A stretch of DNA of 64,000 bases from Geosiphon pyriformis uo1 (lineage: Eukaryota; Fungi; Glomeromycota). Positions 2,443 to 63,228 of this stretch are shown here, in pieces. The stretch covers positions 387,115-451,114 of the forward strand of contig JAAOMT010000566.1 in assembly GCA_016748015.1 (NCBI GenBank). The letters are read 5' to 3'. The notes under the pieces are model-generated. The model was not told the origin of the DNA. It worked only from the letters and a program-made list of their open reading frames with translations, and did not search any database. How positions within the stretch are numbered: the stretch's first letter is position 1; each line of letters starts with the position of its first letter. The position numbers were made by a program, and so were the translations under genes.

Positions 2443-3270
2443 ATGGCCAAAGGAAAATTAGTTTTCAAAATTCTTCTCATATCCACTTTTCTTGCTTATG
2501 CTTTTCTATTCACTTGCGTAGATGCGTTCCCAAAGGAAAAAAGTATGAGTTGATGTATTACTATTTTTGACAAATTTAAAAAGTTTCGAAATTTTTACTT
2601 TTCTGATTATGTGTAAGAAAATATGCTAATTATATTTGGCATATTGTAAACATCACTATTAGGGTGCGTGAGCTGTTCTCAAACCGTTCGAGAATGCCCA
2701 GAGTGTGGTCCAGGACAGTATTGTAAGGTTATTAAAGGGGATTGTAACCATTGTTCATCGGCAACTTGTGAACGTCTAGCTGGAGATCACCCGACGAACG
2801 ATTCAGACGGTTTAATTTGTATACAACAAATTCCTCAATGTCCTACCTGTTTCCATGGTGAAGAATGTGTCAAGTCCCCGAAAACCGCTAATACCTGTCC
2901 TACTGCCACATGTCAAAAAATAAGGGGGAAACCAGGATACGATAGACCAGTTAGATATAACCAGAAAAATGAGCTTGATACTCCTACACTTGAGAAACGT
3001 TTGATTTGTCCAGCCGTTGTACCAAAGTGTCCACCATGTGATGAAGACCAAGAGTGCGTAATTTTAAGAAAACCAGATGCTTGTCCCAAAGGAATCTGTC
3101 AGAAAAAAAACATCAAACCACCACCAGAAACTGGACCTTGCAAAATTCCTTTGAACTGCTTCTGGGCACCTAAATGTCAAAAAAATACTTGCCCGGAAGG
3201 ACAGATATGCCAAGAGTTGCCACAAACATGCAAACAATGTGCTTCTACTTATTGCTCAACTCTTGCTTAA
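2443..3270 (+). CDS. Secreted Cys-rich protein with 4 tandem Opy2-like modules and two Kex2 (KR) sites, ~235 aa; exons 2443-2542, 2663-3270
   Basis: Exon 1 encodes signal peptide MAKGKLVFKILLISTFLAYAFLFTCVDA-FPKEK. The GTATGA..GCTAAT..TAG phase-1 intron joins in frame to give EKR|CVSC. Modules follow Cx2Cx6Cx2Cx5Cx6Cx2Cx4C; second KR at TLEKR. Confidence 0.85.
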
Positions 3271-6200
3271 TCTGTATTTGTGTATTGGATACCAATTATC
3301 TTCTTAAATATATCAACGATAGCATGTTCCGTTTTCAAGATATTACAATTTAGACTTAACGGACTTTTATCTATTAACGTTTTATGAGCATCTTTATCTT
3401 AGACTACAAGGAACTTTGTATTTTCTTAGAGATTATCTGCCGGAGCTTTCAATTTAGCGTTATTAAACAAAAAATCAAGGACTTTAACATATCAATGAAA
3501 AATCTGAATTTTATAATTGATTCAATTAGATCCAATGAGTTTCTAGAAATAAATAATTTTTCAGTGATCATTTTACTAATTGCCGATGAAAAGATTTTCC
3601 TGAGGTAACTTCTGAAAATGCTGCTACCAATACCGCCAATAAAGGGTCACCTCTACACCCGTGTCTCTAGTACGAAGCAAAAAAAGCTTTTCCTATGGAG
3701 CCTTAGTCCTACAGTGACCATGCAGGGGTTAATAACAAAGAGCACGTGTCTCAATATGCTTCTTTCAGATAATTGCATCGGGTATATTGAAAACCATTAA
3801 TGGATCTGCCTCTCATATTGATCACATGCTTTCCCAACCTAGTTTTTAACAAATATTTTTCAAGATTACAAGGCCTTAATACTAACCAAATAAGTATTTA
3901 AAACTTTCCCGATTTCTCAAAAATAGGTTTTTCTACTATTATTATTAATTTTTTTATAGTTAGAAAGGTTAGCTCTCAAATTTCAGTCAGAATGGAAGCT
4001 TTTTTCCCTTATTATTGTTCCCAAAAATAAAAGCAAGTTTTAGGCCAGGAAAATTCAACAATTTTGAACTTACTCCAAACCGTTTAATTCTCTTTTAATC
4101 CTCGTGAGAGCATAGATATTGAAGGAGTAAAACGTAAAAAATTTGTGCTATCTATTTTTCAATTATTAATTCACAAGTTTATAAATAATTTTGCTAGTAT
4201 TAGATGATTCTTGATGAGAAGCACTAAATATGTATATACAGCGCTAGCAAAATAGCTCCCGGCAAATAAAAAAATGACTAGTTTAATGTTTGAGCGAAAA
4301 GCATCAATTTTTACTGAATTGAAGAGTTTCAGCAATTTTGCAAATTTACCAAGATTTCCAAAAAAAATTTCAATATTTAATTGGGGATATTCTGTGCGTA
4401 TAGCAGGAAGAATTTTCTTGTCTTTCTTACCAAATTGGTGGGAATATATTTTCTCTATAAAATTATTGAAACAGAAAACGGTTGCCATGCAACTTCAGTT
4501 TATCGTTCAGGAGCTGGTTCTTTGCGTATTAAAAGATAGGTCAAGAAATCTTCATAACCATTTATGGCATAAATGCACACATAATATTTATCAATCTTAC
4601 TTTAGAGCTAAGTTTTGCAATGAATTCAGAAATGGCTTATAAAGAGTGCGCGATTAGATATTTACCAGCTCAAAAAGTATTTTAAGGTTTGGGAAATTTT
4701 ACTGCATAATATATAAAAGTTCTTTGAAAGTATTTGACAATAATTTTTTAGTTTAGAGATCAAAACAAGGAAGGTGAAAGGAGTATGCTCAATTAGATTT
4801 TGTAAAAATAATTTACATGTATATGGAGCTTAGAAAGATTTGAGAGCTTTCGATAAGATAATTAAAATTAAGGTTGAGAAATATTCACGTACTAGAAATG
4901 CCAAAGGATAGAGCCAACTTTATTCTGTTTACAAGGTGTGTCACCTGCCTAACAAGACATAAGTTGAATCCAGATATTTTTCCAATATGATGTAAAGCAC
5001 ATAAAGAGATTCTGAATTAATAAAGAGATACAGTGTGACAAAAAAAAACTAAAAAGTCTGTGATAGACATTATTCAAAGCAATTCTACTTCTGGAGTGAA
5101 AGATATCAAAAGTTAGAAAAAAAGAAAATTACAGACATATATCAAAATATAGCTCTATAAGTTTTCAGAAATTGTTTGTCTTTTGTAAATAATTGCTTCT
5201 AAGCTAGATACAAAAGAAAAAGACGTTTAAAATTATTTAAGTATATGAAAATTAGACATTTCCATAAACAATTCATTTTAATGTTATTAACTGCAATAAT
5301 ATATTAAAAAATTTGAACTTATTTAATTAAATTCACATTTTCTATTTTGTATAGTGTATTTGGTATTAATATTCTGATTTCTGTTGCTAAATATCAAACT
5401 CATTGTGTTTTATAAGTAAAAAGCAAAAATAGCAAAGTAGCATTAATTCTGGGTTTGCTAATGCTAAAGGCTTAATAAAGTTATTGTTTGTACACAAAAC
5501 ATTAAACTTGCAAATAATAAAATAATTTTTAATCAAATTTTTAATAAAACCTATCAGATTGAAAACAAATTCCATAAACAATTTTCTTGCAAGTGTAATA
5601 ACTTTTTTTTGTTAAATGAGCATGTTAATAACAATACAGAAACACTATTTTTTAAATAAAACAGTTAATACATTATATTAAAAATACTAGAAAATGCCAA
5701 TCTACCAAAAACATTAATATGTATAAATAACTAAAAATTTATCTAAATTTCTGAATATTAAACAAAAATTGGTGAAATGTAAAATATGCAAAATATTGAC
5801 ATACACTAATAAGTTTGTAAAAATTTAAATTGGATTAAATAACTAGAAAATTTTAATGTTATATGTTTTAAATAAAAAAGTTATAATTTAAAACTACACA
5901 TTTATACCTACAGCCAATACAAAGTTAAAAATTAATATAACAAGTGAATGATAATAATTCCATAATTTTGTAATACTTAAAAATTTTGATATTTAAATAT
6001 GCTAATTTCTATATTAATAATAATAAATTTATGTATTTTTCTAAAAAAAATAGTATGTTAAATTTTAAAAAATTGCAAATTAACTAAATCAAAAAAAATA
6101 AATTTGGTTTGAACGTTTTTGGTATATACTATAAAAAATTGATTATTAATAATTAAGTTAAAAGCAAAACATAAAAAAATTGGTTTGTGTAAAAACTAAA

Positions 6201-8275: not shown

Positions 8276-11097
8276 TATTTAGAATAAATTAAACTAAACG
8301 GTTGTAAATCAAAGGTTCGTGTGAATTAATTTTCAATTTCAGATTAATACAGATCTATTTAGAAATAAAAATGACATTGATCGAGGAAGATATCTTTGTC
8401 AAATGCTATCAAGGTATGGCTAGGATGCCACCTAAATGATTAAGAGATATTTCCACTCTGTTAACAGTTTCCGCTTTGTATAATCAGATTCAATTTTTTG
8501 GCTTATACCTCCCAGATTTTCTGTGTAAACACGCTGACTTTGAAATTCGGATGAAAAGACACAACTGAATCGACTTAACAACTCACCATTATTAAAGTTG
8601 ATCTTTTGTTTGTTTGAATAGAAGCAATATTAACAATCGACTATTCTGGCCTTTTGATTTCACAGCAAGATAATTGCGAAAAGTTAAAACAAAGCTTAGT
8701 TTTAACGAATTGCTTTTACAAAAGATCTAATGCGGTTTATCTTCTCTTTATTGCGATTCAACTTAATTGATTTTGATAACTGATTTAAAACATTTTATTA
8801 TGAATTGATTGTAGGTTTCAACATGAACGTGAATTCGTATAATAATAAAATAGATGTTCTAATGCTAAGATTGATAATTCAAATTATTTACATTAATATG
8901 GGGAAATTCTAATATAGTGGCTTTTTAAGAGGGATTGAAAGACTAGTATATTTATCTCTGTAATTTTAATGACTCTTTAAAGTTAAATTTTCGGAAATCA
9001 GACATTTTGTTGTTGACAACGAGATAAGTAAATGGATGCCTTGGAATATTACTCTTACTTAAGCATTGAAACCTCCATTAATTGTACCAGCGGAGTTTTG
9101 ACCATTTTGTTGGTTACCAATTGCATTGGAATTATATCCATTTCTACCACTATTGTCGTTGAACCCTCCGTTAATAGTACCCAGGGACCACTGGCCATTT
9201 TGTTGATTACCAATAGCTCTCTTTACATTGAAACCACCATTAATAGTACCAGCGGAGTTTTGACCATTTTGTTGGTTACCAATTGAATTGGAATTATATC
9301 CATATCTACCACTATTGTCGTTGAACCCTCCGTTAATAGACCATTGGACCACTGGCCATTTTGTTGATTACCAATAGCTCTCTTTGCATTGAAACCTCCA
9401 TTAATAGTACCAGCGGAGTTTTGACCATTTTGTTGGTTACCAATTGAATTGGAATTATATCCATATCTACCACTATTGTCGTTGAACCCTCCGTTAATAA
9501 GACCATTGGACCACTGGCCATTTTGTTGATTACCAATAGCTCTCTTTACATTGAAACCTCCATTAATAGTACCCTGGGACCACTGACCATTTTGTTGGTT
9601 ACCAATTGAATTGGAATTATATCCATATCTACCACTATTGTCGTTGAACCCTCCGTTAATAAAACCATTGGACCACTGGCCATTTTGTTGATTACCAATA
9701 GCTCTCTTTACATTGAAACCTCCATTAATAGTACCCTGGGACCACTGACCATTTTGTTGGTTACCAATTGCATTGGAATTATATCCATATCTACCACTAT
9801 TGTCGTTGAACCCTCCGTTAATAAAACCATTGGACCACTGGNNNNNNNNNNNNNNNNNNNNNNNNNNNNNNNNNNNNNNNNNNNNNNNNNNNNNNNNNNN
9901 NNNNNNNNNNNNNNNNNNNNNNNNNNNNNNNNNNNNNNNNNNNNNNNNNNNNNNNNNNNNNNNNNNNNNNNNNNNNNNNNNNNNNNNNNNNNNNNNNNNN
10001 NNNNNNNNNNNNNNNNNNNNNNNNNNNNNNNNNNNNNNNNNNNNNNNNNNNNNNNNNNNNNNNNNNNNNNNNNNNNNNNNNNNNNNNNNNNNNNNNNNNN
10101 NNNNNNNNNNNNNNNNNNNNNNNNNNNNNNNNNNNNNNNNNNNNNNNNNNNNNNNNNNNNNNNNNNNNNNNNNNNNNNNNNNNNNNNNNNNNNNNNNNNN
10201 NNNNNNNNNNNNNNNNNNNNNNNNNNNNNNNNNNNNNNNNNNNNNNNNNNNNNNNNNNNNNNNNNNNNNNNNNNNNNNNNNNNNNNNNNNNNNNNNNNNN
10301 NNNNNNNNNNNNNNNNNNNNNNNNNNNNNNNNNNNNNNNNNNNNNNNNNNNNNNNNNNNNNNNNNNNNNNNNNNNNNNNNNNNNNNNNNNNNNNNNNNNN
10401 NNNNNNNNNNNNNNNNNNNNNNNNNNNNNNNNNNNNNNNNNNNNNNNNNNNNNNNNNNNNNNNNNNNNNNNNNNNNNNNNNNNNNNNNNNNNNNNNNNNN
10501 NNNNNNNNNNNNNNNNNNNNNNNNNNNNNNNNNNNNNNNNNNNNNNNNNNNNNNNNNNNNNNNNNNNNNNNNNNNNNNNNNNNNNNNNNNNNNNNNNNNN
10601 NNNNNNNNNNNNNNNNNNNNNNNNNNNNNNNNNNNNNNNNNNNNNNNNNNNNNNNNNNNNNNNNNNNNNNNNNNNNNNNNNNNNNNNNNNNNNNNNNNNN
10701 NNNNNNNNNNNNNNNNNNNNNNNNNNNNNNNNNNNNNNNNNNNNNNNNNNNNNNNNNNNNNNNNNNNNNNNNNNNNNNNNNNNNNNNNNNNCCGATAAAT
10801 TCTGGTAAAATATGCATTTTAATTATATTTCTGCCTAATTTAACAACATGGCCTATTTAGTTAAAAAATCATACATAAGATAAGGTATAGCTATGAATTC
10901 TTATAATTTTCTTTATGCTAGTTTCTCTTCGCTAATAAGCTTAAAATGGATTTAGCTTCTCATGTTACATTAATTGGGGAAAAAATGTCTTTGTTTTTTT
11001 TTCAAAATCGTTCACAAAGTTAAATAAACCATATATTATAAATAAAAGTATTCTAATTTCATTTATACTGTTATATTTCATATTAAATTTGCATACA
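8276..11097 (-). repeat. Left arm of inverted duplication (contains KR-repeat gene copy 1 and an N gap)
   Basis: 8276-9058 is the near-identical reverse complement of 17226-17984; 10970-11097 is the reverse complement of 15238-15366. Confidence 0.9.
9059..9841 (-). CDS. Kex2-processed repeat precursor copy 1 (5' part lost in gap; 1-bp frameshift near 9338)
   Basis: About 4.8 visible 162-bp units encoding AIGNQQNG..INGGFN..(A/V)KR. Same stop and 3' flank as 16155-17225. One unit reads GGTCT-ATTAAC instead of GGTCTTATTAAC. Confidence 0.85.
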
Positions 11098-14096: not shown

Positions 14097-16038
14097 GTTG
14101 AAAATTGAATTTTGAAATCAAGTAGTTTTTAAGGTCAGGGAAAAAGTTGAAATAAAAGCTTATTTATGGTCGTAAACTCATTAGAAAATCAAAAACAAAT
14201 AGGAAAAAAAATTTCCTCTCATGAAAAGTGGAATTTATATTGATTCCTTTATTCTCCTGAAAAGGAATTTTTTTTGAAACAAGTAAACAATTAAAGATTT
14301 CAAGTCTCAGCCTCCTTTATGATTCATGACCAAGCTTCATATGTTATTTTTATTTTCATTTTCAATGAGAAATCGTCATTTGGTTTTATTTTCTACTACT
14401 AGTCAAGGCTTGGGACCATTCAATAAAAAATCTTTGGAAACCTTTGAATGATTCCTTTTGAACGAATCTTGCTTGCCTATTCTCAAAAAAGGATCTAACT
14501 CATGATAAGGCTGCAAAATAAAGTATTACCACATGAAGATACGATCTATGACGTATCTTACTGAAATAAGATGTTTCATAACACTATAGCTTTGTGAAAT
14601 CATAAACAAAACTACCTTTTCATTTGTTTTGATCTAGGACCTAAAGTTTCCATCCCAAAACCTATCTCCATCAAAAGATTTTGGGAAGAAATTCTCAAGG
14701 GATATCCTTTGATTTATTTTTCGTGAGAAAGGCTTGTAAATTTTTAATCTATTTTTAGGTATAATCAAAAGCCTGGTTGAAATTTTACAGCCTTAGTGAA
14801 ACTGAGTGTTTTAGCATATCGTATAATTTTACCCTTTTATGTTATCAATACGAAGGACTTTTGCTTAATGTCGAAGAATCAGAATTGATAATAACAAAGC
14901 GCGGCAGATAAATAATTAAACCAAACAAGTTTAATAAGATTCCAACTTTTTTTCGGCTTTTTGCTTAGCAATTTCCCAAAAAAAACTGAAAGTAAAAACA
15001 TATATCTTTATTTTTTGAATAAAGCTTATTTCGACTAATAGCTTTGATTTTTCTTGGGCTTATGTCGCAATTGAAATACAATTCATGTGTTTAAGATATT
15101 AGAATACCAAAAGTTTACACCAAAGACTTAATAATCAACACATATGGTAACTCTCGTTATTCCAAAGTTGATTGTTCTTCAGTTTGATAGAATCATTATT
15201 AAATATGTATCTTTGTTTTATATAACAAAAATTATAAATGTTTGCAAATTTAATATGAAATATAACAGTATAAATGAAATTAAAATACTTTTATTTATAA
15301 TATATGGTTTATTTAACTTTGTGAACGATTTTGAAAAAAAAACAAAGACATTTTTTCCCCAATTAANNNNNNNNNNNNNNNNNNNNNNNNNNNNNNNNNN
15401 NNNNNNNNNNNNNNNNNNNNNNNNNNNNNNNNNNNNNNNNNNNNNNNNNNNNNNNNNNNNNNNNNNNNNNNNNNNNNNNNNNNNNNNNNNNNNNNNNNNN
15501 NNNNNNNNNNNNNNNNNNNNNNNNNNNNNNNNNNNNNNNNNNNNNNNNNNNNNNNNNNNNNNNNNNNNNNNNNNNNNNNNNNNNNNNNNNNNNNNNNNNN
15601 NNNNNNNNNNNNNNNNNNNNNNNNNNNNNNNNNNNNNNNNNNNNNNNNNNNNNNNNNNNNNNNNNNNNNNNNNNNNNNNNNNNNNNNNNNNNNNNNNNNN
15701 NNNNNNNNNNNNNNNNNNNNNNNNNNNNNNNNNNNNNNNNNNNNNNNNNNNNNNNNNNNNNNNNNNNNNNNNNNNNNNNNNNNNNNNNNNNNNNNNNNNN
15801 NNNNNNNNNNNNNNNNNNNNNNNNNNNNNNNNNNNNNNNNNNNNNNNNNNNNNNNNNNNNNNNNNNNNNNNNNNNNNNNNNNNNNNNNNNNNNNNNNNNN
15901 NNNNNNNNNNNNNNNNNNNNNNNNNNNNNNNNNNNNNNNNNNNNNNNNAAACATACCAAAGAATTACCGAAAAGGAAAATAGTCATGTTAAATTGATTTT
16001 GTTTCAGAATCAAAACCATCATGAGAAAGAAAAAATGT

Positions 16039-16154: not shown

Positions 16155-17225
16155 ATGCCTGCTAAATTTTTTATCACCCAAATTTGCACAGCTATCTTTC
16201 TCTTGTCTTCTCTTTCAGCATCTAATGCTGAACCAAATTTTTTCTCTAGCAAGAGAGCTATTGGTAATCAACAAAATGGCCATTGGTCTCAGGGTACTAT
16301 TAACGGAGGGTTTAACGACAATAGTGGTAGATATGGATATAATTCCAATTCAATCGGTAACCAACAAAATGGTCAGTGGTCCCAGGGTACTATTAATGGA
16401 GGTTTCAACGCAAAGAGAGCTATTGGTAATCAACAAAATGGCCAGTGGTCCAATGGTTTTATTAACGGAGGGTTCAACGACAATAGTGGTAGAAATGGAT
16501 ATAATTCCAATTCAATTGGTAACCAACAAAATGGTCAGTGGTCCCAGGGTACTATTAATGGTGGTTTCAACGCAAAGAGAGCTATTGGTAATCAACAAAA
16601 TGGCCAGTGGTCCAATGGTGTTATAAACGGAGGGTTCAACGACAATAGTGGTAGATATGGATATAATTCCAATGCAATTGGTAACCAACAAAATGGTCAA
16701 AACTCCGCTGGTACTATTAATGGTGGTTTCAATGCAAAGAGAGCTATTGGTAATCAACAAAATGGCCATTGGTCTCAGGGTACTATTAACGGAGGGTTCA
16801 ACGACAATAGTGGTAGAAATGGATATAATTCCAATTCAATTGGTAACCAACAAAATGGTCAGTGGTCCCAGGGTACTATTAATGGTGGTTTCAATGCAAA
16901 GAGAGCTATTGGTAATCAACAAAATGGCCAGTGGTCCAATGGTGTTATAAACGGAGGGTTCAACGACAATAGTGGTAGATATGGATATAATTCCAATTCA
17001 ATCGGTAACCAACAAAATGGTCAAAACTCCGCTGGCACTATTAATGGTGGTTTCAATGCAAAGAGAGCTATTGGTAATCAACAAAATGGCCAGTGGTCTC
17101 AGGGTACTATTAACGGAGGGTTTAACGACAATAGTGGTAGAAATGGATATAATTCCAATGCAATTGGTAACCAACAAAATGGTCAAAACTCTGCTGGTAC
17201 TATTAATGGTGGTTTCAATGCTTAA
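16155..17225 (+). CDS. Kex2-processed repeat protein (KEP): signal peptide + 6 x 52-aa N/Q/G-rich peptides separated by KR
   Basis: Intronless 356-aa ORF = 34-aa leader ending SSKR + 6x52 + 5 KR. Each unit is (A/S)IGNQQNGxxSxGxINGGFN twice, joined by DNSGR(Y/N)GYNSN. Confidence 0.95.
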   Translation: MPAKFFITQICTAIFLLSSLSASNAEPNFFSSKRAIGNQQNGHWSQGTINGGFNDNSGRYGYNSNSIGNQQNGQWSQGTINGGFNAKRAIGNQQNGQWSNGFINGGFNDNSGRNGYNSNSIGNQQNGQWSQGTINGGFNAKRAIGNQQNGQWSNGVINGGFNDNSGRYGYNSNAIGNQQNGQNSAGTINGGFNAKRAIGNQQNGHWSQGTINGGFNDNSGRNGYNSNSIGNQQNGQWSQGTINGGFNAKRAIGNQQNGQWSNGVINGGFNDNSGRYGYNSNSIGNQQNGQNSAGTINGGFNAKRAIGNQQNGQWSQGTINGGFNDNSGRNGYNSNAIGNQQNGQNSAGTINGGFNA

Positions 17226-37501: not shown

Positions 37502-38131
37502 ATGACTACTAAATTAATTTCTATTACGTACATCTGTATCGTCATTCTTCTTTTATGCAAATTCTCGGCATCAATCCCTATTCCCCAAGACGTCAACGCC
37601 GACCCAAAGAAAGTGGTAACTGGCAACGAGAATAATGGTGATGACTCTAAAGGTATCATTAACGGAAGCTTAAACTTTAATAATCCCAATAGCACCACGG
37701 ATAAATTTACTGCTAACAAAAACAATGGAAGCAACTCCAAGGGTGAAATAAACGGAAGCATAAACATCGATAAGTCAAGGAATGGCGACAAGCCCAAAGA
37801 GATAAATCTTAACGAGAATATTGGCAGTAATTCTACAGGTGTTATTAAAGGAAGCATTAATTATATTGCAAAGGGTCCTATTACTATTCCTACTACTCCT
37901 ACTACTACAAAGCAAGGTGCTATTGGAGAAAGTCCCGAAATTCCTGCAAGTGTGGCTGCAACCAAGGAACAAAATGTTGGATCCTTCAACATAGTCGATA
38001 ACGGTATAGATCCACTTCCTATTGGTAACTCAAAGGAGTGTATTTTAGAAGGATCTGTTCACTATGTTGGTCCAGATCCAGACCGTCTTTTATCCAAGTG
38101 TAAAATTATTGGAACCTTTGCTGCTAACTAA
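37502..38131 (+). CDS. Secreted protein with 3-4 diverged copies of the KEP repeat motif (no KR sites)
   Basis: Signal peptide; motifs GNENNGDDSKGIINGSLN, ANKNNGSNSKGEINGSIN, LNENIGSNSTGVIKGSIN and weaker GNSKECILEGSVH; Thr/Pro linker; TATAAAAA at 37372. Confidence 0.85.
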   Translation: MTTKLISITYICIVILLLCKFSASIPIPQDVNADPKKVVTGNENNGDDSKGIINGSLNFNNPNSTTDKFTANKNNGSNSKGEINGSINIDKSRNGDKPKEINLNENIGSNSTGVIKGSINYIAKGPITIPTTPTTTKQGAIGESPEIPASVAATKEQNVGSFNIVDNGIDPLPIGNSKECILEGSVHYVGPDPDRLLSKCKIIGTFAAN

Positions 38132-49703: not shown

Positions 49704-49934
49704 AAGACTGATAAACGTATTTATTTGTGATATTTTTAATTTTCGTTATACTCCGAAACACAGACTTTACTGATTACAAGAAGACTGATAAACGTATTTA
49801 TTTGTGATATTTTTAATTTTCGTTATACTCCGAAACACAGACTTTACTGATTAAAAGAAGACTGATAAACGTATTTATTTGTGATATTTTTAATTTTCGT
49901 TATACTCCGAAACACAGACTTTACTGATTACAAG
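49704..49934. repeat. Tandem repeat, 3 x 77 bp
   Basis: Units start at 49704, 49781 and 49858 (AAGACTGATAAACG...); nearly identical. Confidence 0.95.
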
Positions 49935-51964
49935 ATTAGTATTTTCTAGCTATATCAAAAACAGAATTTTCTGTTTATTAATCAGTGGAAAATTGAATTG
50001 TATGAAAGAAACAATAATGAGATAAACATAATAGATAATTAATCTTTTTGTGGAGTGGCAAAAACAAATTAAAGCATTTCTTAAAAGAAATTATTTTAAA
50101 TCTGAAAGAATGATGTTTAAGGAGTCTAATATTATATATAAATTTTGAATTAGTTTTATCTTTTAGGATTTTTCGAAAATTTATAAACAAAAATTTATTG
50201 AAATTGGTAATCTTTTTCACGGAAGTAAAAATCTTCCGGCTAAATTTCAGAGTAAATTTTTTAGAATTGATACAAACAAAATAGGATAATTTTTAATGAG
50301 AAACGACATTTGACCGTATTATGAATTTCTTGAATTATATTTTTTATCAAGTCTAAAACTTAATTCAAAAGATTTTTGGCTATAAATAAACATTGATAGT
50401 TATAAATAAATATTGTAAATAGATTTTTGTAGTCTGTCAGGTTTTTTTTTCACTAAAATTTTTAAACTATTAAAACTCTTTGATGATTCTTTAAGTGTTA
50501 CATAATTACAAAGTTTTTTTTAATAATATCCTTGTAATCCTTGTTTTTGATTGGTTTTAACGTTTTGAATTTATTCAAAATAAATTCAAAGAATGAAGAT
50601 TTTCCAGAAGAAAATATTCTTTAATCCTGTTATTATTCAATTTCTTGCCCAAAAAAAATTATCAAGAGAATAGCTGATATTACTAATTGGAATTTTTTGG
50701 GAATTTTACTTATTTACCTTTATATAATGTGAGAATATAGGTTTCAAGAGATGTAAAAACTGCTGACCACCGATCCTTTGAAAATGATTTTCGTGACTTA
50801 CATAACCGACATTTTGCAATCTCGATCACTAATAATAATTTATTTTTAAATGCCGCTAAAAACTTTTTATAAACCTTTGTTTCCCGATCTAGAATTTACC
50901 AATTTTGGATTAGACTATTACCCAGCCAATGGTCTATTATGCTTTATAAGTGAGTAATTAATTTCTATTTATCAAAGAAGCAATCTCCTTTCATCTTGAC
51001 ACATTTTAGAGGTATTTAATCTACAGGTTTATAGAATTTATGAAAAAAGAATTATCTTAAACATTAAGCATCTGAAAAAGCAGCATTTTAAACTATAAAT
51101 TGGGTGGACAATTATTCACTTAATTTTGCGTTTAAATTGAAATAGTTCATATACTGAAACCCTAAAAAATATTAAATTATTAATAGCTTAAAAATTCAGA
51201 TATTTCAAAGGTAGGACAAGTTTTTAAAAGGGTTTTCAGACAAAATGAGTTCAAAACAGTCCAGTTAAAATATTTAATAACTAAGATTCATGAAATGTTT
51301 AAAAATTTCTGAGATTTGAATTTTCATAATAATTGATTAAAAATGAAATTTCGTTAGAATGTCAAACAATCAGAAATTAAGGTCCTATTGAAATGAACAA
51401 GTTTCAAAATTTTGTGGTCATCTATTACAACTGTCTTTGTCACTTTGTCTTAAAATTTTTCAAACCCAATGATGTTGAGCTAACTATAGAAGAAAATGTT
51501 AAGATAAGCAAAAAACTATAAGAAAATAACAAGTTATGATTTTTTAAAAGAAATTTTTAACCGCACGTTTCTGGTAAAAGCTGTATTTTAATCAATCTCA
51601 AAAGCAGTTCTCGAAATAATAAATGAACTTGGCAAGATCTATCTTTATAATCATGGTGAAATACAACTAAACATGTTTATTGAAGAAGTTGCAATTCTAT
51701 AATATTTAATTATTATATGGTTGTAATTTTAATTTTTTATCATATTATATAATAATATTTTAAAGCAAAATGTCATTATGGAGAGAAAATGGGTAAGGTC
51801 ATAACATTTAATAGAAATATCTACTTTTTTAGTTAATTGGGATGAATGAAAGTTTTGTAGAGCCTTTTTTAATATTGAAATGTTTTTATGATAACTTATA
51901 AAACTACTGATCAGTCATTGAGAACACAAGACAAAGTTATTAAATGTTATTTATACACAGTAAC

Positions 51965-60545: not shown

Positions 60546-61351
60546 ATTTTTCAAAAATAAATATCCCTAGAGTTTTTTTTATTAAAATTTAGCTTCATTT
60601 TTATACTTGACAAGTTTTTTTAGTTCCTGCTAACATTATTTTTTCTCTTAAGATTTTTCTTTTTTTGTATTTTGGTTAGGTTTTCCTAACTTCTATTTTT
60701 ATTTTATTTCTTTTCGTTTTTTTCTATGTATTTTTTCAAAGTTTTTGTTGCAACAGCTATGTTTTTTTAAAATAAAATTTAAGTGTTAAAAAATAAAAAC
60801 TAGGTTTTTTTGTAAAATGAAAAGATTAAACTCTGTCGGGTTCCAAGCGTAGAAATTTTGCCTCTAACTCTCGCATAAATATGAGTAAAGTTACGCGGAA
60901 ATACTCTTTTAGCTGTTGTCTTTCTACATTTCTATTCTTTTTGACTATACTCCTGAGATTTTAATGGGGGTTAATATCGTGACTATTAGATGGCCAGAAA
61001 TATAAAATGGTTTAAAGACGTGTGTTGCAATCTGATGGAGATATATAATATTTAATAAAAGATTGAACTTTAAAACAGTTTATTTAATTTCACAAATCAC
61101 TTTTGAATTTATAACAAGAACTTGAGAGCAAAATTTTTCTTCTCATAATATATATGGAATTTTTTTTAAAGCGAAAAAATGTACAGATTACTTTTTGGTT
61201 TAGTATCAATCTAAATAAATTATTCTTTTCAATAATTCATGATTAAAAATAGCGCGTAGATATAAATTTTATTTTTTATGTATAGCACTCAACCATTGCC
61301 CAAGATATTTACGAATCAATTTCCGCCCCTTTGCATAATTTTGTTTAGCAA

Positions 61352-63228
61352 TCAGGTCTCTGTGTTAGAGTTTTTCTTAAAACTGGGTTGAGATGAAGCG
61401 TTTTCATCAGGTTGAGAGCAAACTTGTGCTTCCTGATCACCATGATCTATTTTTGCTTTTCCTTTAATCCTTCTTGGTCCACCATTTGACTTTGAAACTT
61501 TTCGCTTTCTAAAATTTACTTGCCAAATGATATACATTGTGAAGATAGTAAGGCAGGCCATGATAGCTGCAACCAGTGGGAATTTCATTTCGCGTTTTTC
61601 ATCTGGTACATTGAATGGTAGTGTTTGAATGTTTTCTGCTGGTATAATTGAGTTCACCCATTTATAAGTTCCGTTTGAGATATCAAGTGCGTTTATTTCA
61701 TTGCTTTGGCGACGATTTCTCCATCCTAAAACCAAATGGGCATTATCGGAATTTTTTGATTTTGGAGGAAGTGAAAAAATGAAATTTCTTTTTCACTTAC
61801 CGAATGCTATTATCAGATATTCATTATACAATGTAGCTGTGTGTGAGCCAGGAGTATGTAATGGACCATGATTCTCGGTATATATAATAGTCCATTTCAT
61901 TTCTTCAGCATTTAATAATAAAAGATCATCTTTATCTGATCTAGAAATTAATTCGAGTCAGTACAAAAATGTGTTTCAAATAAGATGTTCTTACAGCTCA
62001 TTTATGAAAATATTTGCCTTTTGTCACCTTTTTTGAAAAGACCTCCGTATACAAGGATACCTCGCCCATCTTTTACTAATTATTATTATTGCCGCGAATA
62101 AAATTTTAAGAAAAGAGATATATATATGAATAAAAAGTAGTTGATGCAAACGCAAACTCACTTAAAACAGCTGTATGTCCAAAACGTGGAGCAATTTTTT
62201 TGGTCGAAAAAGCTCGCTATATTAGTGAATTAAGTATTAAAATGTATCTAATCGGGGAAAGTTGAGTTAACGGTTAAATTATAAATCTGGAAAAAATTTA
62301 CCTGAATATGCCATTTTCCTTCTAATGAATCGAAAACCAAAACCTCAATAGAAAGAGTCAAATTCAATGACACGAATTATGAATGCTTTATGGCTTCGAG
62401 CTTAGTGGGGAAAATTTACCTCATTCATATCCCTAAAGATCTTATCACGAGTATTCTTTCCACCCAAATAAATTATCTTTCCATTATCCAGCATGGTTGC
62501 GGTATAACCATAAATAGGCTGCACCTCCTTACTTATTGATTCAATCACCAACCATTTAGCACTTCTTTTATCAAAAGTGTACATATTATTATCGTCAATG
62601 GGAGAATAAAGTCCTCCAAATATATAAATGATTTCATTCTTGTCAATTACAGCATTTAGCATTTGACGGGGAGTTGGGCCATTAGATGAGTTACTTAATA
62701 GCGAGATTTTCGGCTGCTGTACCGAGGATTTTGAGAGTAATAGCGAATACAGTGTGTTGACACCTTTTGGTTGAAATTTTGAGATGGTGGTCATGGTACG
62801 AGCAAGTTTATCGGAAAAACTGGCGTTCTGACATGAGAAGAACCAAGGGAGTGACGATCCGTTAAAAATAAAAATACCATAAATAACCAGGCTCAAAAGC
62901 GAATCCAACTAACCCCTCCAAAAAAGTATATTGTTTCTTTATCTATTGATGATAAAACTGCTGCTGTTGAATAAATCCCTTGAAGTGGGGCAGGATAGCT
63001 TGGGACTGTTGGAAAAAATCGTGGAGAACGGAAATTTACGAACTTTGAAAGATTTAAGTAAAAAATGTCACCAGAAATTTTATTGTTCTTTAACAACCCC
63101 CCTACAAAGTATATTCTTTGACCAACTAAATTTGCAAAATGCCAATTTCGTGCAGCAGGAGTGAATGATGCAAATATTTCTTTATAAAATAAGATAGAAA
63201 TCAACAGAATTGTGTGTTTAAAGATCAT
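61352..63228 (-). CDS. Type I membrane kelch/galactose-oxidase-like beta-propeller protein (multi-exon)
   Basis: Signal peptide; kelch GG motifs (RIYFVGG, IYFFGG, IYIFGG, IIYLGG, PRFGHTAV, ILVYGG, HTATLY..IIAFG); TM helix FPLVAAIMACLTIFTMYIIW followed by a basic stretch. Confidence 0.9.

Follow-up and report, generated by a model that had tools for sequence, protein, structure and literature searches.

A KR-free paralogue of the repeat-peptide precursors of Geosiphon pyriformis, compared with described repeat-protein systems

Closest described systems

Kex2-cut precursors of repeat peptides are common in fungi. KEPs constitute a defined fungal class that is abundant in Rhizophagus (Le Marquer et al., 2019, PMC6339444; see also Umemura, 2020, PMC7329392). 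The protein considered here (P0001, 209 aa) is encoded at positions 37502-38131 (+) of a window of 64,000 nucleotides, C549:387115-451114 of the Geosiphon pyriformis assembly, C549 being a contig of 451 kb; positions given without a contig or locus name refer to this window. A Kex2-type repeat precursor of 356 aa, hereafter the precursor, is encoded at 16155-17225 (+), 20.3 kb upstream of the P0001 gene. Like the KEPs, represented in this comparison by the precursor from the same genome and contig, P0001 has a homologous signal peptide and an 18-residue motif in tandem. Unlike them, it has no KR or RR between the motifs, which are only three in number and mutually diverged, and its conserved C-terminal part, with two Cys residues, is an addition. 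Since neither KR nor RR flanks its cores, P0001 lacks the defining feature of KEPs.

A second group of interest comprises the GN-rich secreted proteins of early-diverging Glomeromycotina, among them GpRIC1-3 of Geosiphon and the Pabra/Amlep "IDPs" (Schultz et al., 2022, PMC8786786, citing Hoffrichter, 2018). In the sections of that paper drawn on here, the GpRICs are described as proteins of 456-470 aa, all containing KR, amyloid-like behaviour is suggested for the class, and no KR-less homologue with a Cys-containing tail is mentioned among the GN-rich proteins of Geosiphon (PMC8786786). P0001 shares with this class a small size, predicted secretion, Asn/Gly-rich repeats and a lineage-restricted distribution, and the GpRICs come from the same organism. 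In being small, predicted to be secreted, high in Gly+Asn and restricted to Geosiphon, P0001 agrees with the GN-rich class. The GpRICs differ from it in being longer, GN-richer and KR-containing, a distinction drawn from their published description.

In the curli system, a major repeat protein (CsgA) is accompanied by a diverged homologue (CsgB), and the identity of about 35-39% between P0001 and the precursor falls in the range of that pair. P0001 as modelled, with low confidence, also resembles curli in its strand-turn-strand repeats with conserved Asn, Gly and Ser positions, and CsgA is nominally the first structure picked by the solenoid-like predicted models. The curli repeat unit measures about 22 aa, compared with 30-32 aa, linker included, in P0001; the Geosiphon proteins differ further in their eukaryotic secretory pathway, in proteolytic release and in showing no Curlin-repeat match. 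Curli genes lie side by side and are co-regulated, whereas those of P0001 and the precursor are 20 kb apart and have no upstream sequence in common. Any fibre of the Geosiphon proteins, and its nucleation by P0001, would be putative.

The repellents of Ustilago maydis derive from Rep1, a secreted repeat precursor cut by Kex2, and the peptides form amyloid-like fibrils at the surface (Teertstra et al., 2009, cited in PMC6339444). Rep1 is the nearest precedent for an amyloid at the level of the whole system, and no sequence similarity between it and P0001 was found. Rep1 is not known to have an uncleaved partner protein.

Architecture and homology of P0001

The gene is an intronless and complete CDS (37502-38131, stop codon included; this and all features of P0001 given below are on the + strand) formed by one uninterrupted ORF, and a protein identical to P0001 was already present in the protein collection. 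The signal peptide (residues 1-24, 37502-37573) has a hydrophobic core, is drawn as a helix over residues 3-23 in the AF2 model and is probably cleaved after S-A-S, as judged by the -3/-1 rule. It is followed by an N-terminal spacer (residues 25-40, 37574-37621) containing KK36-37, by the three 18-residue Asn/Gly motifs, namely Repeat 1 (residues 41-58, 37622-37675), Repeat 2 (residues 71-88, 37712-37765) and Repeat 3 (residues 103-120, 37808-37861), by a Thr/Pro-rich insertion of 26 residues (123-148, 37868-37945) and by the C-terminal part (residues 149-209, 37946-38128), in which C180 (38039-38041) and C200 (38099-38101) are both conserved in the intact paralogue P0002. Residues 170-193 of this last part represent the longest near-invariant run in the KR-less subfamily. 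The three motifs are diverged from each other, the linkers between them are unequal, and the repeat region as a whole contains 23% N and 13% G. P0001 contains neither KR nor RR, KK36-37 being its sole dibasic site, and it lacks a hydrophobic C-terminal GPI-attachment signal, the sequence ending in ...IIGTFAAN.

The first-pass annotation of this DNA had proposed that the ORF encodes a diverged KR-less homologue of the precursor, with three motif-like stretches spaced by 30 and 32 aa. The three stretches were found at residues 41-58, 71-88 and 103-120, and the core pattern, which begins at residues 42, 72 and 104, gives the same spacing. The charged substitutions that it had pointed out are evident as well (22% of the residues in the repeat region of P0001 are charged, vs about 4% in the 52-mer predicted to be released from the precursor), as are the Thr/Pro stretch and the C-terminal part with two Cys, but the constant spacing of 31 aa ascribed to the precursor was mistaken, since the spacing there alternates between 31 and 23 aa.

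Searches with Pfam gave no match for P0001, its C-terminal part or P0002, the Curlin repeat (PF07012) was not matched in P0001 or in the precursor at E values up to 10, and a feature search of the ESM Atlas returned no usable match. When P0001 was considered as a HET-s/HRAM amyloid signalling motif, the NLR/HeLo context was found to be absent; P0001 has a signal peptide and Pfam finds nothing in it. The idea that the C-terminal part consists of further diverged repeats was considered as well, a "G-S-hydrophobic-x-hydrophobic" element recurring 5-6 times; it is not supported, as 86-215 of 1000 shuffles reach the score of the C-terminal part against the repeat profile.

By BLASTP with composition adjustment, P0001 matched the precursor with an E value of 2e-11 over the whole protein, the alignment starting at residue 1, and with an E value of 9e-9 when the repeats were used alone. 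In composition-preserving shuffles the repeat region scored z 8.4 against the precursor, with 0 of 2000 shuffles reaching the score, and the first 36 aa scored z 6.5, indicating that the signal peptides are homologous too. A non-significant alignment had been named beforehand as a possible refutation of the proposed kinship; the alignment is significant, and P0001 and the precursor are true homologues, the former diverged and KR-less (35-39% identity). The linkers can also be placed: the second linker of P0001, before Repeat 3 (...DKSRNG...), aligned with the long linker of the precursor (DNSGRNG...), and "DKFTA" in the first linker aligned with "AKRAI" of the precursor. P0001 is thus equivalent to roughly one and a half units of the precursor minus the cleavage site. 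When the 128-Mb assembly of the organism itself was searched in six frames, 13 places were returned, every one of them a family member, with the precursor genes at E values of 3e-6 to 2e-5. At the scale of a library of 1.84 billion proteins the match between P0001 and the precursor is not significant, and the homology thus rests on the within-genome comparison together with the colinear signal peptide and the order of the motifs.

The precursor contains 12 copies of the motif and six KR, one after every second motif, and the predicted peptides measure 52 aa. A second, inverted copy lies at 9063-9841 (-); it is interrupted by an assembly gap (N run 9842-10791), and two frames are needed to read it. 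Precursor-type genes are found on C549 at about 59.6, 60.9, 77.0, 396 and 403 kb, and also on contigs C727 and C778. In two of these paralogues, L006 (L006:1495-2223, C549 about 60.9 kb) and L009 (L009:1495-2247, C549 about 77.0 kb), KR follows every 18-aa motif, and DK--RSI stands in place of the long linker DNSGRxGYNSNSI in the alignment with the precursor. The peptide predicted to be released from both is about 21 aa long with a single motif, as it is for most of the precursor paralogues, which weakens the picture of an obligatory peptide of two pseudo-repeats. P0001 and P0002 have only linkers of the long, KR-free kind. The family thus forms a series with no KR (P0001, P0002), one KR per second motif (the precursor in the window) and one KR per motif (L006, L009), a series whose direction only an outgroup would set. 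Selection, as the series shows, has maintained the motif in two settings, within a releasable peptide and within an intact protein.

Some precursor loci deserve comment on their own account. The repeat arrays are evidently difficult to assemble, as seen from the N runs at 9842-10791 and 15367-15948. A minus-strand ORF of 202 aa (L010, C549 about 59.6 kb) goes out of frame after four units, and its tail is a repeated "DPSVINK.VSFRLGQLMEVST", i.e., the precursor repeat in another frame; this copy is either a frameshifted pseudogene or an assembly error. The same 242-aa precursor occurs on two contigs (C727:169666-169917 and C549:60942-61193), representing a recent duplication or separately assembled haplotypes.

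Range, selection and transcription of the KR-less subfamily

The KR-less subfamily has four copies in the Geosiphon genome, two of which are intact: P0001 and P0002, a 180-aa hypothetical protein (G9A89_004885, C549:275748-276269). A word-based protein search with P0001 returned these two; with the precursor as query it gave no match, the precursor itself included, a blank attributed to its composition. The two are colinear, have the same architecture and show 63% identity over aligned columns; the Thr/Pro insertion occurs in P0001 only and appears as a gap in P0002 and in the truncated copy. The latter is a 5'-truncated duplicate of P0002 (C549:283715-284038, 98% identical) annotated within a fused gene model (P0003), and the fourth copy is a degenerate fragment (P0005) on another contig (C597:211319-211408). 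The P0003 model joins the truncated copy (from "...GGFV" on) to about 100 unrelated residues and is probably a mis-prediction over a pseudogene fragment. An exhaustive HMMER search of 1.84 billion representatives, based on the profile of P0001 and P0002, recovered convincing relatives in Geosiphon only, these being the intact paralogue P0002 and two fragments. A bacterial Big_13 repeat protein of 765 aa (P0004) was discounted: a stretch of 25 residues of the C-terminal part matched it six times (E 2e-4), which was judged to be a chance or repeat-inflated match.

Members of the family are spread over 370 kb of C549. There is no synteny between the P0001 and P0002 loci, similarity being limited to the stretch from about 30 bp before the ATG to the stop codon. 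Other repeated DNA was observed around these genes. The flank of the degenerate C-terminal fragment on C597 (L012:943-1497) is 81-86% identical to positions 2443-4042, the region of a Cys-rich ORF (2668-3270), and is either a repeated element or a second gene family travelling with these genes. L004:2009-2964 and 61243-62135 share, at 66-76% identity, a dispersed repeat of some 0.9 kb that lies beside the truncated KR-less copy and near the end of the window, and an intergenic region (49704-49935) holds a 77-bp unit three times with 98% identity.

Comparison of P0001 with P0002 by the Nei-Gojobori method gave a dN/dS of 0.37 at a dS of 0.68, with values of 0.34 for the repeats and 0.46 for the C-terminal part. 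An old duplication thus produced two copies that moderate purifying selection has maintained ever since, and P0001 is not a decaying copy. The existence of truncated or degenerate copies in the subfamily (C549:283715-284038, C597:211319-211408) and its restriction to one species could be taken to mean that the P0001 gene is itself a functionless, decaying relic of a precursor gene. With the ORF intact in two copies at this dS and dN/dS, and with contigs from a probable cDNA run lying on the ORF, this reading is very unlikely.

These contigs come from the one public run (X1) that covers part of the stretch; both are short, of low depth and inside the P0001 ORF (37686-37837 and 37921-38129, + strand), with no X1 contig in the other 3.4 kb of the 4 kb examined. 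The second (37921-38129) has a loose 5' end, CGGCCGGG, which lies on the 5' side with respect to the + strand and reads like the 3' end of the SMART cDNA oligo. The type of run is a guess as far as cDNA is concerned. Illumina sequencing of the inserts from a cDNA expression library of Geosiphon is reported in PMC8786786. It is probable, if not proven, that the P0001 gene is transcribed from the + strand. Precursor genes have about 200 bp of upstream sequence in common among themselves and P0001 and P0002 about 30 bp, with no upstream DNA common to the two subfamilies; a shared promoter as a proxy for co-regulation was rejected on this ground.

The distribution of basic residues raises the question of whether P0001 could still act as a peptide precursor, with charged variants of the motif freed by another protease or by cleavage at KK36-37 and monobasic sites. 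KK36-37 is one residue off from the position of the first KR of the precursor, and K or R residues are present in both linkers. Yet P0002, which is without any dibasic site, has a single R aligned in place of the KK; purifying selection acts on the linkers and the C-terminal part as it does on the motifs, which is unexpected for spacers; and the motifs have diverged from one another, vs the near-identical cores of a precursor. Release of peptides from P0001 is accordingly considered improbable.

Predicted fold, composition and the curli comparison

In the AF2 model of P0001, which was built on a 4-row family alignment, mean pLDDT is 48, with 54-68 in the repeats, values under 45 after residue 123, and 31-40 over the Thr/Pro insertion (residues 123-148), where secondary structure is absent. 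Each motif is predicted to form a pair of strands, and the chain turns immediately after the conserved Asn-Gly: Repeat 1 falls inside strands 37-45 and 50-59, Repeat 2 inside strands 67-75 and 80-90 and Repeat 3 inside strands 99-106 and 112-122. The model of the precursor, based on an alignment of three paralogues (pLDDT 61, pTM 0.59), likewise has two strands per motif and a turn at the conserved Asn-Gly, the long linkers forming low-confidence loops. The models thus predict that P0001 and the precursor have a solenoid-like repeat unit of stacked beta-hairpins in common, keeping in mind that AlphaFold readily draws solenoids for repeats of this kind. The first-pass annotation had attributed the conservation of the N/G positions to a structural fold and had listed a different predicted fold among the findings that would speak against it. 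In the two models the conserved N, G and I residues map to one predicted beta-hairpin per motif, suggesting that these positions reflect a structural unit, and both low-confidence models are of the same solenoid-like class. As weak evidence, the solenoid-like prediction does not contradict the proposed structural fold.

No significant Foldseek match was obtained for either model. Among the weak rows, the top ones and most of the others are beta-helices or solenoids, and the first row for the precursor is a Pontibacter CsgA (E 6.8e-3, TM 0.24). When P0001 was compared with 48,161 chains by VIA-align, the E. coli CsgA fibril came first (Z 8.7, rmsd 8.7 A over 96 residues), followed by SufB/D-type helices (Z 8.0-8.1, rmsd 2.5-3.4 A) and, lower, by RTX rolls, FapC (Z 4.3) and Awp adhesins (Z 4.1-4.2); by the tool's own statement, models lacking a true match typically reach a best Z of 7-8. 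The CsgA matches of both models are thus at background level and provide weak evidence, by which curli is not singled out. The A-domains of the Candida glabrata Awp proteins resemble P0001 in that a secreted beta-helix-like body is followed by a Thr/Pro-rich stretch; P0001 differs from these adhesins in lacking a GPI signal and in being much smaller, and the structural matches are at background.

By analogy with CsgB and CsgA, the first-pass annotation had suggested that P0001 could serve amyloid-like fibres of the Kex2-released peptides as nucleator, cap or minor subunit. In one version, P0001 would present a ready-folded template of three rungs at one end, the other end being closed by a disulfide and unable to propagate. 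The repeat unit and the predicted hairpin register common to P0001 and the precursor are in line with this idea, as are the nominal ranks of CsgA (top VIA-align match of P0001, Z 8.7, and top Foldseek match of the precursor, E 6.8e-3), the FapC match (Z 4.3) and an identity between the two proteins that falls within the CsgA/CsgB range. There is, moreover, a fungal precedent for amyloid from Kex2-released peptides in Ustilago Rep1-1 (cited in PMC6339444), and GN-rich Glomeromycotina proteins have been called amyloid-prone (PMC8786786). Nevertheless, amyloid formation by the released peptides is itself only putative, the structural scores are at the background of the tools (rmsd 8.7 A, TM 0.24), and the Curlin repeat finds no match by Pfam. 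In addition, the two subfamilies lack common upstream DNA although the precursors share about 200 bp among themselves, and the genes are 20 kb apart in a family scattered on a 451-kb contig. Most precursor paralogues are predicted to give single-motif peptides of about 21 aa, weakening the two-rung peptide on which the pairing was based, and the repeats of P0001 are highly charged and aromatic-poor, with sequons in the second strand of the motif. On balance, a role of P0001 as nucleator, cap or minor subunit seems unlikely; the more specific proposal that the KR-less proteins are capped three-rung solenoids that template or end the growth of fibres from Kex2-released rungs appears quite unlikely.

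Aromatic residues amount to 3.5% in the repeat region of P0001 vs 9.6% in the released 52-mer. The repeat region of P0001 has 5 N-glycosylation sequons, located in the second strand of the motif, 3 of which are kept in P0002, and the precursor has 0. An enrichment of sequons in P0001 was rejected (5 vs a shuffle mean of 3.0, P 0.15), and their absence from the precursor is significant only if its near-identical repeats are counted as independent, the value for one 54-aa unit being P 0.19. The contrast in sequons is therefore recorded without serving as an argument. Taken together, the differences in composition and sequons are explained by a soluble intact glycoprotein no less well than by a template.

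Based on the available evidence, we favour, with a probability of roughly 0.55, the view that P0001 is an intact, folded and probably glycosylated extracellular beta-repeat protein, an uncleaved paralogue of the Geosiphon repeat-peptide precursors. P0001 would be an old paralogue that has retained the signal peptide and three 18-residue motifs from the shared family, with all its inter-motif linkers of the long, KR-free kind; consequently, the Golgi protease Kex2 would have nothing to cut between the motifs. Each motif may fold as a beta-hairpin, the three being stacked in a short beta-solenoid-like body that the C-terminal part, with a probable C180-C200 disulfide, may extend or close. N-glycans (5 sequons, 3 of them common with P0002) and O-mannose on the Thr/Pro insertion are probable. 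Outside the cell, where its signal peptide would direct it, P0001 would then act as a soluble or wall/matrix-associated glycoprotein and not as a source of peptides.

For the biology of this family, the finding means that uncleaved, every-second-repeat and every-repeat forms occur as a graded series in one Geosiphon genome, all based on the same repeat and the same signal peptide. This makes it testable whether a folded secreted repeat protein gave rise to a peptide factory or the reverse. Selection is also seen to maintain the repeat where it is not released. If the peptides form fibres, P0001 would be the obvious candidate partner; otherwise, it is another lineage-restricted secreted protein of an unusual symbiotic fungus. 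Should P0001 turn out to template or cap such fibres, the pair would represent a eukaryotic counterpart, fed by a protease, of the nucleator and subunit of curli, in a fungus that houses Nostoc.
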